DNA from: Macrostomum lignano
Taxonomy: Eukaryota
Direction: 5' to 3'
Length of the DNA: 64,000 nt
Assembly (NCBI GenBank): GCA_002269645.1
Contig: NIVC01002821.1
Location: forward strand, 74,045 to 138,044
Shown: in pieces, positions 1,318 through 10,300 of the stretch
Numbering within the stretch: position 1 is the first letter of the stretch
Layout of the letters: the number at the start of each line of letters is the position of its first letter
Position numbers and translations under genes: made by a program
The notes under the pieces: generated by a model
Databases searched by the model: none
The model's input: the letters and a program-made list of their open reading frames with translations, nothing else
What the model was told of the DNA's origin: nothing

Positions 1318-4300
1318 CTGTCCGAATGCTGGATGGCCAAATCGTAAATCTTGACGAGCTCCTGGAAGGAGAAGCAGTACATGGGGCTGAGGCAGCGCAT
1401 CAGGCCGGTGACCTCGAAGCAAACGGCGCCCCGGCGCGCGATGTCCCGGTGGCTCTCGCGGCTCTTCCGCATCAGCGCCTCGGACTCGGCCAGCCGTTCC
1501 AGCGCCGCCTCCGTCTCCTCCATCTGCTTGGCGAGATCGTTCAGCCGGCCAGCCAGCGGCAGGTCGTTCATCAGCCTGGCGCCCTCCGTGGCCAGGTGCT
1601 CCGCCACGGCCTCCTTCACGGCTTCAAGGCACTTCCGGTTGCGCAGCCGCTCGGCCATGACAGCGCGCCATTCGCGTTCGATGCGCGGCTTCTCCAGCTC
1701 GAGGAATCGATCGAGCAGCAGCTCCTCGGTGCACTGCCGGCTGCGGTGGAAGCTCAACAGGTTTGTATAGGCGGCCAGGTGGTGCGGCACCTGCAGTGAG
1801 CGGCGGAAGATGTTATTATAGAAAAATTAGTATTACTGTTAATTACGTATGCTGAATAAACGCCTAAGGACGCCCAAGTTACTGTAGACCTGATAAGGAT
1901 GTACACTTTCGCTGAGAGTGTACATGCAGTGATTAAAGTAATTCTAAAAATAGACGAGAAGAAAAGGAAGCAAACTGAGAGTGTACATGAAAAGCATAGA
2001 AATGCTTCTAAAAATAGACCAGAAAAGGAAGCAAACTGAGAGTGTACATGAAAAGGATAAAAATGCTTCTAAAAATAGACCAGAAAAGGAAGCACACCGA
2101 GAGTGTACATGAAAAGAATAAAAATGATTCTAAAATAGACCAGTGAACGTACATACATGTACGAGTGCAAGGGTAAAAGTGCATCTAAAAATAGCACAGC
2201 TAATAGAACTCACCCCGGAAGGCGGAGCGCTAGTGTGCAGATAGAGCCGGAAGCTGGGCGAGCACTCAACCTCGTGATCGAGCAGCAGCATCTTGAACGG
2301 GACAGTCTCCGTGAAGAACTTCCACTGCTGCATGAGCACTGGCCGGAAGCGACGATCCTCAGCCAGCTGGTCGAGGTCGCAGTCAGTGACCACCAGCACG
2401 CTGCCGTCAGCCAGAGCGGCTTCGAGCTGGGTACGCAGGCTGTGGTACTTGACCTCCACCTGGAGAGGCAGAGAGTTGTATTGATAATTCACAATGATAT
2501 TGTTGATCAATGCTCCTTTGCCCAGTCTTATATGATGTTTTCTAAATGAGCGAGCTAATCAAATCCTGATTGGTCCAGTGGGTCAGCGCAATTGCGTGGC
2601 AAACCCAAAACAAACGGGTGGCAACCCCAAAACAAACGGGTGGCAACCCCAAAACCAGCGCAATTTGTCACATTTCAAAGTTAAGCAGGGTTGATTGCGG
2701 TTAGCAAGCAGCTGGATAGGCTGAGTTTCAGTTCACTTCAAGACGTGTATTAAAAGCATGACCAATGATTAATGGGCCTTTATCTATGATTTATGATAAT
2801 TATCAATCACTGATAAACAATTGCGGCCCGGCTCACAGTGGACTGCTGGTATTTGCGCAGCCAGGTGACGGCCGCCCTGGTGGGGTCGCAGATGAGCGGC
2901 CAGGCCTGGCAGTGCCGCTCCAGCATGACGAAGCAGGCGTTCTCCCGCTGCAGCCGGGTGGTCGGCAGGCGCAGCAGGTCCAGCTCGTCCGTGTCCACCT
3001 GCGCGGGGTTGCGGGTGTATACAATACTACTGTTAGTAATTTATCGTACGCAGACACTGTACGCTGGCACGCACTGATACACGCGCTCACACAGGGTGCA
3101 CAGCGTATGGATTTGATTGAAGTGTCAGCTAGCTAAAAGCGGAATCGAACTCTGCCATTTGGCATGGCGGCATTTCTTTGCTCGCCATGCAAGCTTTTCG
3201 TGCCACACTCAATACTGTCTACTTATCAGTAGACGAACTCTGACATCTAGGTTGATTTACAAGCGTATCAGTTTGAGTTTAAAATTAGCAATCGGCGCCC
3301 GCCGTTGGGAAGCAAACAACAAAGTAAACTTCTTATATAAAGCTTCTGACCTCAGCCTTTACGTCTTAGCAATCCCCCCAAGCCTTGCCACCTTGCTAAG
3401 GCATTGCCAAAACAAAAGCGAGTTTCGCACCGATTTAAACAGAAAGTCGGCCAGCTCCACGGCCTGCGGTCCGCCGGCCCGTTGGTCGAACAGCGCGCGC
3501 CTCCGGACGGACGGCACCTCGGCCACCCCGGCCGCCTCGCACAGCTGGCGGAATTTCCCGGCCAGCCGACGGCGGGCGTCGACGCCCAGGCCGCCGCAGT
3601 AGGTGAGGAAGGCGGCCGCTACGGCGCAGTCGACCTGCAGGACGGAGTCGCTGGAGAACTCGGCGACAAAGTCTGACCACTCGGCTTCCATTCGCTGCAG
3701 CTGCTGCACGATGGCCTGTGCGCGTTGCAGGCGCTCGTCCATGGAGTCGATCTCGCCCTGCAGGCGGTGCTTGGTCAGGATGACCCGGTCATACTCCTCC
3801 TGCAGCTCCGCCAGCTCCGATCGCACCTTGTCAGCGTCCTCTGTTGCTGCGGCGGCGTCGGCAGCGGCGGCTTCGGCGTCGGCGGCCGAGGCTGCATCGG
3901 CAGCTGCTGCTTTGGCCTGCGGATTGGCGGGTCGAACAGTTCAGCAACTTGCGCTGTGCGTTCACCGGTCTGTTCTGGGGTTGCCACCCGTTTGTTCTGG
4001 GGTTGCCACCCATTTGTACTGGGGTTGCCCCCCGTTTGTTTTGGGGTTGCCACCCGTTTGTACTGGGGTTGCCCCCCGTTTGTACTGGGGTGGCCACCCG
4101 TTTGTTTTGGGGTTGCCACCCGTTTGTTTTGGGGTTGCCACCCGTTTGTTTTGGGGTTGCCACCCGTTTGTTTTGGGTTTGCCACCTATTTGTTCAGAGG
4201 TTGCCACATATTTGTTCAGAGGTTGCCACATATTTGTTCTGGGGTTGCAACCTATTCGTTTTGGGGTTTCCACCGGTCTGTTCTGGGGTTGCGGCCTATT

Positions 4301-7300: not shown

Positions 7301-10300
7301 TAACTCCCTCCCCCTCCCCCGATAATTGCCTTCCCGATAACTCCCTCCCCAGATAACTCCCTCCCCCGATAACTCCCTCTCCCGATAACTCCCTCCCGAT
7401 AACTCCCTCTCCCGATAACTCCCTCCCCAGATAACTCCCTCTCCCGACAATCTTGAAAGCTGAGAAAGTGCAGAAGCGGCAATGAGCAAACCTCAGGCGG
7501 CAGGTCGTTCATCTTGAGAAAGTGGCTCAGCGACGAGTTCGGATCGGTGCGCGACCGGATTTTCTCCAACACGGTGACCTTCTTTGTCAGCTCGGCCAAC
7601 ACCCGATCGGCCTCGGCGCGCACCTCCTGGTAGTTTTGCAGCTTGGCTTTGCGGGCGGCGCGGATTGTGTGCTTGTCGTGCCGGCACTGCGCCAGAGTGG
7701 CGAGCGCGCGCCGGAGCAGCGCCAGGCGGTTGCGCCGCTCGCCAGTCTTGCTGGCGTACAGGTGGCGGAAGGCGTGCAGCAGGCGGCGGAAGTGGGTCGG
7801 GCCCAGCGGGAAAGAGTCGCCGCCGCTGTTGTCATCTTCGCCGCTGCGGACGTGCCGGGAGCGGAGGTGGTCCACCAGCACCTGGGGACGAGTGTAGATG
7901 AAGTGGCTGGGTTTAAGCGATTGGCTAGGAATCTGCGTGAATCCTCACAGTTAAGTAAATAGAATTACTGAAGATATCCATGTACCATGTACGCTTTTAG
8001 AGACAGGAATTTGAAGGCTGAAAAATAAGTAAAACAAACGATTTAAAAAAATGTGCAGAAATAAGTGTACAGTAACAGACAGGAAGTGTACACATGCAGG
8101 AAGTGTACAGACAGGAAGTGTACACAGACAGGAAGTGCAGAAACAGGAAGTGCACGCAGACAGGAAGTGCAGAGACAGGAAGTGCACGCAGACAGGAAGT
8201 GCAGAGACAGGAAGTGTACACAGGCAGGAAGTGTACACAGACAGGAAGTGTACACAGATAGGAAGTGTACACAGACAGGAAGTGTACACGGACAGGAAGT
8301 GTACACAGGCAGGAAGTGTACACAGACAGGAAGTGCACGCAGACAGGAAGTGCAGAGACAGGAAGTGTACACAGGCAGGAAGTGTACACAGACAGGAAGT
8401 GTACACAGATAGGAAGTGTACACAGACAGGAAGTGTACACGGACAGGAAGTGTACACAGGCAGGAAGTGTACACAGACAGGAAGTGCACGCAGACAGGAA
8501 GTGCAGAGACAGGAAGTGTACACAGGCAGGAAGTGTACACAGACAGGAAGTGTACACAGATAGGAAGTGTACACAGACAGGAAGTGTACACGGACAGGAA
8601 GTGTACACAGGCAGGAAGTGTACACAGACAGGAAGTGCACGCAGACAGGAAGTGCAGAGATAGGAAGTGTACACAGACAGGAAGTGTACACAGGCAGAAA
8701 GTGTACACAGACAGGAAGTGCACGCAGACAGGAAGTGCAGAGACAGGAAGTGTACACAGACAGAAAGTTTACCCAGACAGGAAGTGTACACAGATAGGAA
8801 GTGTACACGGACAGGAAGTGTACACGGACAGGAAGTGTACACAGGCAGGAAGTGTACACAGACCTTCTGCGCATACGGCCAGTTGGGCACTCGAACGGTC
8901 TCCTGCTTGGAGTGGCTGCGGCCCTCCTTGTACTTGGTCAGCTCCACCTCCAGCTCCTGGTCGCCAGCCCACGGCACCTGGCGGAACTCGCGCAGCACCA
9001 GCGAGTGCACCTGGGCGAAGGCGCGGCCGAGGGCGTCGGCGTCCTCGCGGCTGAGCTCGAGCTGTGCGTTTTCGCTGAAGAAGTGCTGCGACTCATGCAG
9101 CAGAGTCGGCATGGACCAGTCGTTGACCCAGTCCAGCTGGCAGTGCTTCAGCAGGCAGGGGTAGCTGCTGATGGCGCTGCGTAGCAGCGGGTCGCCCGGC
9201 GGCAGGCAGATAACGAAGTGCAGGTGCTGACGCACTCTGGACAGGTAGAACTTCACGGGGTCGTTCAGCAGCGCCTGGTTCTCCTTCTTGATGGTCGGCA
9301 CCAGAGACTGCATCAGCGTGTCCATCTCCTCGTTGGTGAACAGTTGCGGGTGCTCGCCACAGGCGATAACGGAGTTGACGGCGTCCCAGTAGGAGCTGTC
9401 CATCATGCAGCGGGCCGTGACGATCACCGCGACGTGCACCGCGTCCAGGCCGGCGAGCCGCAGAGCTCCGCGCAGGCTGTCAAAGAAGGCACTGCGCGAC
9501 CGGGTGTCCACCTCCTGCACCCGCATCTCCAGCATGAAGGCGGCCAGGCGGCACAGGGTGGACAGCTTCGTGCCGATGGACCCCACCAGCAGGGCGTGAC
9601 CGCGGAAGGGGATCGACAAGGCGCGGTGCACCCGGACGATGTGGGCGATCACCGAGTCGGAGAGAGTCGCATCCAGGGCCTCGTGCTTCTCCTCCTCGTT
9701 GTAGCGGGTCTGCGGAAATGAGTCATTGGCTAGGATTTGTACACAGACAGGATTTGTACACAGACACGATTTGTACACAGACAGGATCTGTACACAGATA
9801 GGATTTGTACACAGACAGGATTTGTACACAGACAGGATTTGTACACAGGCAGAATTTGTACACAGACAGGATTTGTACACAGACACGATTTGTACACAGA
9901 CTGAATTTGTACACAGGCAGAATTTGTACACAGGCAGAATTTGTACACAGACAGAATTTGTACACAGACAGGATTTGTACAGACACGATTTGTACAGACA
10001 CGATTTGTACAGACACGATTTGTACGCAGACAGGATTTGTACAGACACGATTTGTACGCAGACACGATTTGTACGCAGACACGATTTGTACGCAGACACG
10101 ATTTGTACGCAGACACGATTTGTACGCAGACACGATTTGTACGCAGACAGGATTTTCGAGCAGTGAGACTGAGCACTGGATGGAGCAGAGTGAACCCGAG
10201 AAACCTGAAAACCTGAGAGTCTGACTCGTGTGCACAGTGATCCAGGCCACATTAATTTGGGACGCTTGAATGAAATCTGGCTTAGGGCTTGTCATGCGAT

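Follow-up and report, generated by a model that had tools for sequence, protein, structure and literature searches.

Dyneins use their stalk both as a communication line and as a lever, and its length is almost invariant. What becomes of a dynein that breaks this rule? The question is raised by a 64,000-nucleotide stretch of the genome of the flatworm Macrostomum lignano (contig NIVC01002821.1 of assembly GCA_002269645.1, positions 74,045 to 138,044 of the forward strand; hereafter the window), which carries on its minus strand part of a dynein heavy chain gene. An initial annotation had noticed, between positions 3431 and 7881, insertions in both coiled-coil arms of the stalk and had suggested a natural dynein with a lengthened or kinked stalk, possibly of an uncharacterised class. 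Our analysis makes it quite probable that this region encodes the stalk and microtubule-binding domain (MTBD) of a DNAHX-type dynein heavy chain, that is, of a metazoan offshoot of the outer-arm alpha dyneins that is very probably Kollmar's class 12, and that this chain is non-motile. A natural lineage of this kind shows the outcome of turning a motor into something else.

The window has a eukaryotic character, with GC-rich exons lying between introns packed with minisatellites. By tblastn, residues 1-4404 of a 5251-amino-acid relative from the caecilian Rhinatrema (P0035) are collinear with window positions 33824-1305. The N-terminus of the dynein is thus placed at about 33.8 kb; the remainder of AAA5, all of AAA6 and the C-terminal domain are encoded beyond the start of the window, where the gene has its 3' end. 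Individual exons match the Pfam families DHC_N1, DHC_N2, AAA_8 and AAA_9. Between 7881 and 3431 (minus strand), six exons with GT-AG borders splice in frame and encode the AAA4 small domain (AAA4S), the first coiled-coil arm (CC1), the MTBD and the second arm (CC2). The gene and the elements of its stalk are as follows:

1-33839 (minus): dynein heavy chain gene of DNAHX/class-12 type, partial, from tblastn collinearity and Pfam
8863-9703 (minus): AAA4 exon, in which Walker A is degenerate (GSIGTKLS) and the AAA4S insert begins, at the position of the pre-sensor-II insert (PS2i)
7492-7881 (minus): exon E1, coding for the last part of the AAA4S insert, helix 7 of AAA4S and proximal CC1
7551-7492 (minus): first half of the CC1 insertion, the last 60 nucleotides of E1
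6113-6538 (minus): exon E2, with the second half of the CC1 insertion, distal CC1, MTBD helix 1 and the first MTBD insert
6538-6464 (minus): second half of the CC1 insertion in E2, an acidic stretch and the conserved DEYDxxF motif
6301-6293 (minus): NPP of MTBD helix 1, in E2
6241-6113 (minus): first MTBD insert (before helix H3), 43 residues long and following H1, in E2
5646-5760 (minus): exon E3, MTBD helices past the first insert, from tblastn with the amphioxus (P0034) and monogenean (P0059) relatives at 47-63% identity
4810-5129 (minus): exon E4, with the second MTBD insert, MTBD helices H5 and H6, the CC2 proline, the start of CC2 and the start of the CC2 insert
5106-4993 (minus): second MTBD insert, about 38 residues long and preceding H5, holding a conserved motif, in E4
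4896-4894 (minus): CC2 proline, in E4
4845-4810 (minus): first part of the CC2 insert, in E4
4597-4611 (minus): candidate 15-nucleotide micro-exon (QAEEK) within the CC2 insert, with AG/GT borders and the frame kept with or without it
3431-3916 (minus): exon E6, with the Ala/Asp-rich part of the CC2 insert, proximal CC2 and the start of AAA5
3916-3836 (minus): Ala/Asp-rich part of the CC2 insert, an imperfect GCN repeat, in E6
3688-3677 (minus): EAEW, end of proximal CC2, in E6

Both peptide strings that had first drawn attention to the stalk are present on this strand, the CC1 string across the E1/E2 junction and the Ala/Asp string at the opening of E6. The dynein introns are nearly all filled by long minisatellite arrays with units of 22 bp, 44 bp, 16/37 bp and others (for example at 3963-4328, 5180-5590, 6749-7451, 8046-8860 and in many introns up to 32 kb), some of which translate into long spurious open reading frames (ORFs).

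How far does this stalk depart from the canonical one? We counted residues in a MAFFT E-INS-i alignment of the window protein with ten relatives and a diverse set of nine canonical dynein heavy chains, covering the sequence between the end of AAA4 and the beginning of AAA5; BLAST anchors were used for the relatives, the DW...W and WPL.IDP anchors being too diverged in the family members. All nine canonical chains share identical spacings of 22 residues between AAA4S helices 6 and 7, 140 in CC1 (from the proline of AAA4S helix 7 to the 'PP' of MTBD helix 1) and 81 in CC2 (from the CC2 proline column to the Trp of 'RW'), in line with the initial remark that stalk length is strongly conserved among dyneins. 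Human DNAH1, taken from the PDB as an independent check, likewise has 162 residues (22 + 140) over the first two intervals. The corresponding intervals of the window protein measure 75 (+53), 183 (+43) and 113 residues (+32, or +27 without the micro-exon), and its MTBD has 178 residues as compared with 93-117 in canonical dyneins (about +80). The excess grows by up to 3 residues, to +35 for CC2, when the prolines themselves are matched. Because the canonical spacing is invariant, chance is ruled out as the source of these differences. The figures first put forward, about 40 additional residues in CC1 and about 30 in CC2 (about 35 with the micro-exon), are therefore confirmed by the alignment, and the AAA4S and MTBD inserts come in addition to those then noticed.

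The inserts are not private to Macrostomum. An exhaustive HMMER search with an ortholog fragment (P0001, 37% identity to the window protein) retrieved 147 proteins at E <=1e-10. Long named relatives come from the sponge Sycon ciliatum (5434 amino acids), Branchiostoma belcheri, Argonauta hians and the monogenean Cichlidogyrus casuarinus, as well as from the vertebrates Erpetoichthys, Polypterus, Latimeria, the frog Leptobrachium and the caecilian Rhinatrema; no mammal, bird or reptile was among the named relatives in this search. Their database names are 'DNAH5-like', 'DNAH8' or 'DNAH8-like' and, for the Rhinatrema protein, 'dynein gamma chain, flagellar outer arm-like'. The insert sites are identical in the sponge, amphioxus, cephalopod, monogenean, fish and amphibian relatives. 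A protein homology search with the spliced stalk, and then with a six-member family alignment, found P0001 only, its word index being apparently swamped by low-complexity and P-loop words. CC1 measures 181-189 residues in the relatives (+41 to +49) and CC2 99-109 (+18 to +28), with the exception of the amphioxus protein P0034, whose CC1 has 224 residues (about 40 further ones) and whose CC2 has 76; these anomalies may reflect a retained intron in CC1 and a lost exon or gene-model error in CC2.

Several relatives also show that the inserts belong to the coding sequence. P0001, which shares the CC1 insert and both MTBD inserts and lies in a compact 14.6-kb contig together with the rest of the motor, has one uninterrupted ORF from AAA4 through CC1 and the MTBD to the start of CC2; that of P0036 extends from AAA4 to the start of the MTBD, and that of P0060 covers the whole stalk including both inserts. 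Since these insert-bearing stretches are single uninterrupted ORFs, the inserts cannot simply be spliced out in those species. The two outcomes named at the outset as fatal to the claim, normal heptad counts and splicing-out of the inserts, are thus not what we observed: the spacing exceeds the canonical one, and the inserts of the relatives lie within open frames.

The internal composition of the inserts differs from one site to another. In AAA4S, the +53 insert sits exactly at the H6-H7 (PS2i) position of DNAHX and holds conserved PWAG and N.PY motifs that the family shares. In most members, Pro or Gly opens the CC1 insert (TDPNS here); a short amphipathic element and an acidic stretch come next, and then the DEYDxxF motif, which restarts the helix. 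The two halves of this insert, which flank the E1/E2 junction, are both conserved in the relatives, and the canonical CC1 proline ('A.P.L') has been lost across the family. Over ~30-70 homolog fragments, the majority residue reaches 40-50% per column in the CC1 core (DEYD.eF.rmreE) and 60-80% in the block around MTBD H5. The motifs SL..FL.M.D and DEYDxxF in CC1 and GITIxxA[RK]YSSEDAA around MTBD H5 are conserved from the flatworm to vertebrates, and because of this conservation we argue that the inserts have a function. The CC2 insert of the relatives is rich in proline and not conserved. The Ala/Asp run of the window protein is encoded at 3849-3893 by an imperfect (GCN)n repeat and, to judge from the DNA, is a lineage-specific low-complexity expansion within this variable insert by slippage of the repeat. 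At the same place of the CC2 insert, as judged by eye, the orthologous compact locus L001 has two apparent 27-nucleotide micro-exons (8859-8885 and 9047-9073, plus strand), and the length of this insert could be tuned through micro-exon use.

To which dynein class does this chain belong? The stalk is highly divergent, scoring below the threshold of the Pfam stalk model and matching PDB entries at best with E ~1e-8. For the linker and AAA1, the PDB matches are headed by the outer-arm gamma chain (6.5e-95), DNAH8 (2e-87) and DNAH5 (1.5e-83), followed by a Tetrahymena gamma-type outer-arm chain (1e-74) and, at 4e-63 or weaker, by DNAH17, DNAH9 and inner-arm dyneins; other high-ranking matches resemble protist gamma-type outer-arm chains. 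The best PDB matches of the tail are likewise the Chlamydomonas outer-arm gamma chain, DNAH8 and DNAH5. In a neighbour-joining tree of 480 shared columns, the family including the window protein separated from the nine canonical dyneins in 200/200 bootstraps. These results uphold the initial view of a natural dynein with inserts in both arms, a non-canonical stalk geometry and a class distinct from DNAH5, DNAH8 and DNAH9.

The class had nevertheless been described, so that the label 'uncharacterised' has to be dropped. Among the 17 dynein classes of Kollmar (2016, Mol Biol Evol 33:3249, PMC5100056), class 11 corresponds to human DNHD1, and classes 12 and 13 occur in sea urchin and not in human; class 12 is holozoan, with 'an extremely unusual stalk domain' and a tail like that of outer-arm class 3. 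More recently, Chai, Suchenski Loustaunau, Zheng, Yang and Zhang (2025, bioRxiv 10.1101/2025.01.18.633724) reported DNAHX, a 5272-amino-acid 'DNAH8-like' chain from sea-urchin sperm (type sequence Lytechinus variegatus XP_041462850) that branches off outer-arm alpha and ranges from sponges to frogs. According to that preprint, AlphaFold models show the MTBD bent back toward the ring by insertions in both coiled-coil arms (CC1 and CC2), the MTBD itself carries disordered and variable inserts before H3 and in H5 to which no conserved role is ascribed, and a pre-sensor-II insert (a beta-hairpin and a helix) between AAA4S H6 and H7 locks the C-terminal cap. In AAA1, Walker B is kept, whereas the Thr of Walker A and both sensors are degenerate; cryo-electron microscopy gave evidence of a locked, pre-powerstroke, ATP-bound and non-motile motor in a heterodimeric 'dynein-X'. 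The same authors tied DNAHX to external fertilisers and to sperm flagella or flagellar growth, and called DNHD1, which is without Walker B catalytic residues and has inserts at other sites, its possible 'structural ortholog' (bioRxiv 10.1101/2025.01.18.633724). The lineage having been recognised as class 12 in 2016 and as DNAHX in 2025, ours is a rediscovery and not a discovery. What is new is a clean genomic model of the stalk exons of a flatworm member, as opposed to the frameshifted public Macrostomum model, together with evidence against a strict link to external fertilisation and the sperm flagellum, and conserved motifs within the inserts that are candidates for function.

The catalytic motifs of the window protein show degeneration of the same kind. 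AAA1 is only ~25-30% identical to that of canonical dyneins. Its Walker A reads GPSGCGKT instead of GPAGTGKT, with the first Thr replaced by Cys and GKT kept (the caecilian relative has the Thr-to-Val change reported for the urchin); Walker B (IDEVQK) retains DE; sensor I has changed from NPGY to NP-FS, losing the Tyr and keeping the Pro; and sensor II has changed from GLR to GLN, losing the Arg. The Walker A of AAA4, in the exon at 8863-9703 (minus strand), is degenerate as compared with the canonical HALLVGVGGSGKQS, and nucleotide binding by AAA4 has probably been lost too.

To see how such inserts might be accommodated, we relied on AlphaFold2 models of P0060, the only relative shorter than 1200 amino acids that spans the whole stalk. 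With a 49-sequence alignment, the model reached a predicted local distance difference test (pLDDT) score of 67.7; the single-sequence model was poor (pLDDT 41.7) and was not used. Four helices are modelled at pLDDT 85-94, two in CC1 (148-231 and 274-314) and two in CC2 (492-533 and 559-620), and low-confidence, largely non-helical inserts break each arm in two; the MTBD inserts appear disordered, and the region of the AAA4S insert is of low confidence. Foldseek matched this model to dynein stalks only locally (root-mean-square deviation ~50 Å) and weakly to the 'elbow' coiled coils of MukB, cohesin and SMC proteins (7ogt, 6h2x and 9gm6, TM-score <=0.2), which we take as an analogy only. The P0060 model agrees with the fold-back predicted in the preprint and argues against an in-register lengthening of the stalk. 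A heptad scan based on hydrophobicity at positions a and d discriminated poorly even for canonical stalks, and it can be cited only for its lack of signal across the inserts.

These data bear directly on the alternative that fares best, namely a working, motile dynein that merely has a longer or re-angled stalk, with another reach or directionality as a result. In its favour, both arms are longer, AAA1 keeps the GKT of Walker A and the DE of Walker B, the core helices of the MTBD are well conserved in the family, and the CC2 insert of the window protein is helix-prone. However, the inserts are unequal (+43 in CC1 against +27 to +32 in CC2, with a difference of ~20 residues in the relatives), and no heptad multiple is conserved in their lengths across the family; Pro/Gly opens the CC1 insert, which contains an acidic, low-confidence stretch, and the MTBD bears two large inserts. 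The inserts being unequal, starting with helix breakers in CC1 and variable in CC2, they would not form an in-register coiled-coil extension. Moreover, the Tyr of sensor I and the Arg of sensor II are lost, and the AAA4S insert occupies the PS2i position, the site of the motor-locking insert of the urchin protein. We therefore consider a motile dynein with a longer stalk unlikely, and the initial idea of a lengthened-stalk motor is not supported, in view of the unequal inserts, the Pro/Gly start in CC1, the non-helical breaks of the ortholog model and the lost AAA1 sensors.

What is most likely instead is a non-motile dynein with a stalk that is hinged or folded, rather than a motor of longer reach. 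In such a stalk, the inserts would form a flexible hinge between two coiled-coil segments, one proximal and one distal, and would thereby uncouple the ATPase ring from the MTBD, which communicate by helix sliding. With its AAA1 crippled and its AAA4 insert in place (a motor lock in the sea-urchin structure), the protein would most likely serve, in a two-headed complex, as a partner chain or as a scaffold that binds ATP but is not motile. The step from a hinged stalk, a degenerate AAA1 and an AAA4 insert to such a scaffold would hold by analogy with the urchin, from which its experimental support comes.

Several points weigh against a hinged, non-motile DNAHX. The CC2 insert of the window protein has no Pro or Gly and is rich in Ala, Asp, Glu and Lys, so it may be helical, unlike that of the relatives. 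The P-loop and Walker B of AAA1 are intact, and some ATPase activity may be possible. The structural model is that of a divergent ortholog (P0060, ~24% identity) and not of the window protein, and non-motility has been demonstrated for the sea-urchin protein only, in a preprint. The exon junctions and the micro-exon are predictions from genomic sequence. Membership in DNAHX is judged from the derived features that are shared, the phyletic pattern and the nearest canonical chains, and not from a reciprocal best hit with XP_041462850, the L. variegatus sequence that was neither among the matches of our homology searches nor in the PDB entries searched. Finally, that DNAHX equals Kollmar's class 12 is very probable, and that the window gene is DHC12 is probable, Kollmar's sequences having been compared by description.

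Given its degenerate catalytic motifs, its low-complexity CC2 expansion and the polyploid, repeat-rich genome in which it lies, the gene could alternatively be a decaying pseudogene copy of an outer-arm dynein. The public M. lignano protein A0A1I8FIK3 (P0007, UniRef) might seem to point the same way: it is near-identical to window positions 15700-20160 (minus strand), also out of frame and in intron sequence. Yet it behaves as a frameshifted, intron-containing model of this very dynein gene, for which the window permits a better model; the frameshifts lie in the public model and not in the window. Besides, every exon block matching the 4404 aligned ortholog residues is open and collinear, the six stalk exons have canonical splice sites, and family motifs are kept at 60-80% majority identity, all of which makes a pseudogene very unlikely.

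An orthologue of DNHD1 (Kollmar class 11) seems highly improbable. DNHD1 is also highly divergent, with many inserts and a degenerate AAA1, and the remark on a 'structural ortholog' in the preprint would encourage the comparison. However, DNHD1 occurs in mammals, which are missing, as are birds and reptiles, from the named relatives of the window protein; its Walker B is reported lost, whereas the window gene keeps DE; its inserts lie at other sites (by description, not by sequence); and the tail and linker in the window clearly resemble those of outer-arm class 3, in keeping with Kollmar's description of class 12. Barely credible is an ordinary DNAH5/8 outer-arm gene whose inserts are gene-model artefacts (a retained intron) or private low-complexity expansions, since, for all that the Ala/Asp run is microsatellite-like, the introns are repeat-rich, the relatives are named DNAH5-like or DNAH8-like and the exon model comes from genomic DNA, insert sites and internal motifs are common from sponge to amphibian and open in single ORFs elsewhere, identity to canonical dyneins is ~25-30% even in AAA1, and the family split was found in 200/200 bootstraps.

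What might a non-motile DNAHX do in this flatworm? Fertilisation is internal in Macrostomum, and caecilians, the coelacanth, Argonauta and monogeneans are also internal fertilisers, all of them groups with members in the family (P0035, P0055, P0040 and P0059, respectively). The sperm of Macrostomorpha are, in addition, aflagellate (PMC4446793). A role in external fertilisation or in the sperm flagellum fits M. lignano badly, because its sperm lack flagella and its fertilisation is internal; DNAHX is not strictly tied to either, and a restriction to external fertilisers does not hold here. The presence of an apparently intact DNAHX copy in M. lignano, whose sperm have no axoneme, suggests instead a role in somatic cilia. 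We tentatively advance, as a joint proposal that we hold possible without favouring it, that DNAHX works in the motile cilia of somatic tissues, namely the multiciliated epidermis and protonephridia, or more generally in the handling of axonemal dyneins, and not in the sperm flagellum or external fertilisation, and that the conserved cores of the stalk and MTBD inserts are modules making a new binding surface at the stalk hinge, with a variable CC2 insert perhaps tuned by micro-exons. Macrostomum lignano is a laboratory model in which RNA interference and transgenesis are established, and the somatic-cilia hypothesis is therefore directly testable.

Outside the dynein gene, the window holds other features. 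Their coordinates, with strand where applicable, are:

36146-37129 (plus): open frame of 328 amino acids with an N-terminal SAP domain and acidic, coiled-coil-like regions
44000-46000: region of 30% GC, as against ~50-60% GC in the surroundings
46868-50610 (plus): mitochondrial ATP synthase beta-subunit gene, with a minisatellite-filled intron at ~47.6-48.3 kb
51500-51883 (plus): ATP synthase subunit g gene, next after that of the beta subunit, the two neighbours coding for subunits of one complex
53941-54657 (minus): exon of a bHLH-PAS transcription factor, with a HIF/Sim-like bHLH and the start of the PAS fold
56200-57900: tandem repeats (56.2-57.9 kb), strongly C-skewed, with a GC skew of -0.51

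Scans of the window for tRNAs and Rfam families found nothing.

Comparison with known systems helps to place the window protein. The SMC/MukB/cohesin 'elbow' offers a working analogy, in that an interrupted antiparallel coiled coil can fold there; there is no homology to SMC proteins. Engineered stalk variants from the Carter and Yildiz laboratories (about 2008-2019), in which changes of stalk length or angle reportedly alter dynein output, provide another, although those variants have matched heptads in both arms and still move, whereas the inserts in the window are unmatched and the ATPase is degenerate. DNHD1 is likewise a divergent, insert-rich and probably non-motile metazoan dynein, but, from the literature, its range includes mammals, it has other insert sites, its Walker B is reported lost and it has no origin from outer-arm alpha. 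With DNAH5 and DNAH8 (and the Chlamydomonas outer-arm gamma chain), the window protein has its best PDB matches for tail, linker and AAA1 and a common domain order; these chains differ in their canonical 140/81 spacing, their lack of AAA4S and MTBD inserts and their intact AAA1 sensors, at ~25-30% identity. Compared by description, DHC12 agrees in being holozoan or metazoan and absent from human, in its outer-arm class 3 (DNAH5/8) tail and in its unusual stalk, although Kollmar's stalk is without a typical microtubule-binding site or coiled coil, whereas in the window the MTBD and the arms are insert-laden yet alignable.

The closest likeness is that to DNAHX. The window gene has the inserts of both coiled coils, those of the MTBD before H3 and at H5, and that of AAA4S between H6 and H7; its AAA1 is degenerate at the Walker A Thr, sensor I and sensor II and keeps Walker B; its nearest canonical relative is outer-arm alpha (DNAH5/8), and the family ranges from sponge to amphibian. 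DNAHX chains have ~5,000-5,400 amino acids through inserts along their whole length; the part of the present chain that lies in the window is collinear with residues 1-4404 of a 5251-amino-acid relative. The window gene differs in its host, a macrostomorph flatworm that fertilises internally and whose sperm are aflagellate, in a less degenerate AAA1 (with an intact GxxGxGKT), in a CC2 insert rich in Ala/Asp and free of Pro and Gly, and in inserts that hold motifs shared across phyla (DEYDxxF in CC1 and another in the second MTBD insert) that the preprint does not report.

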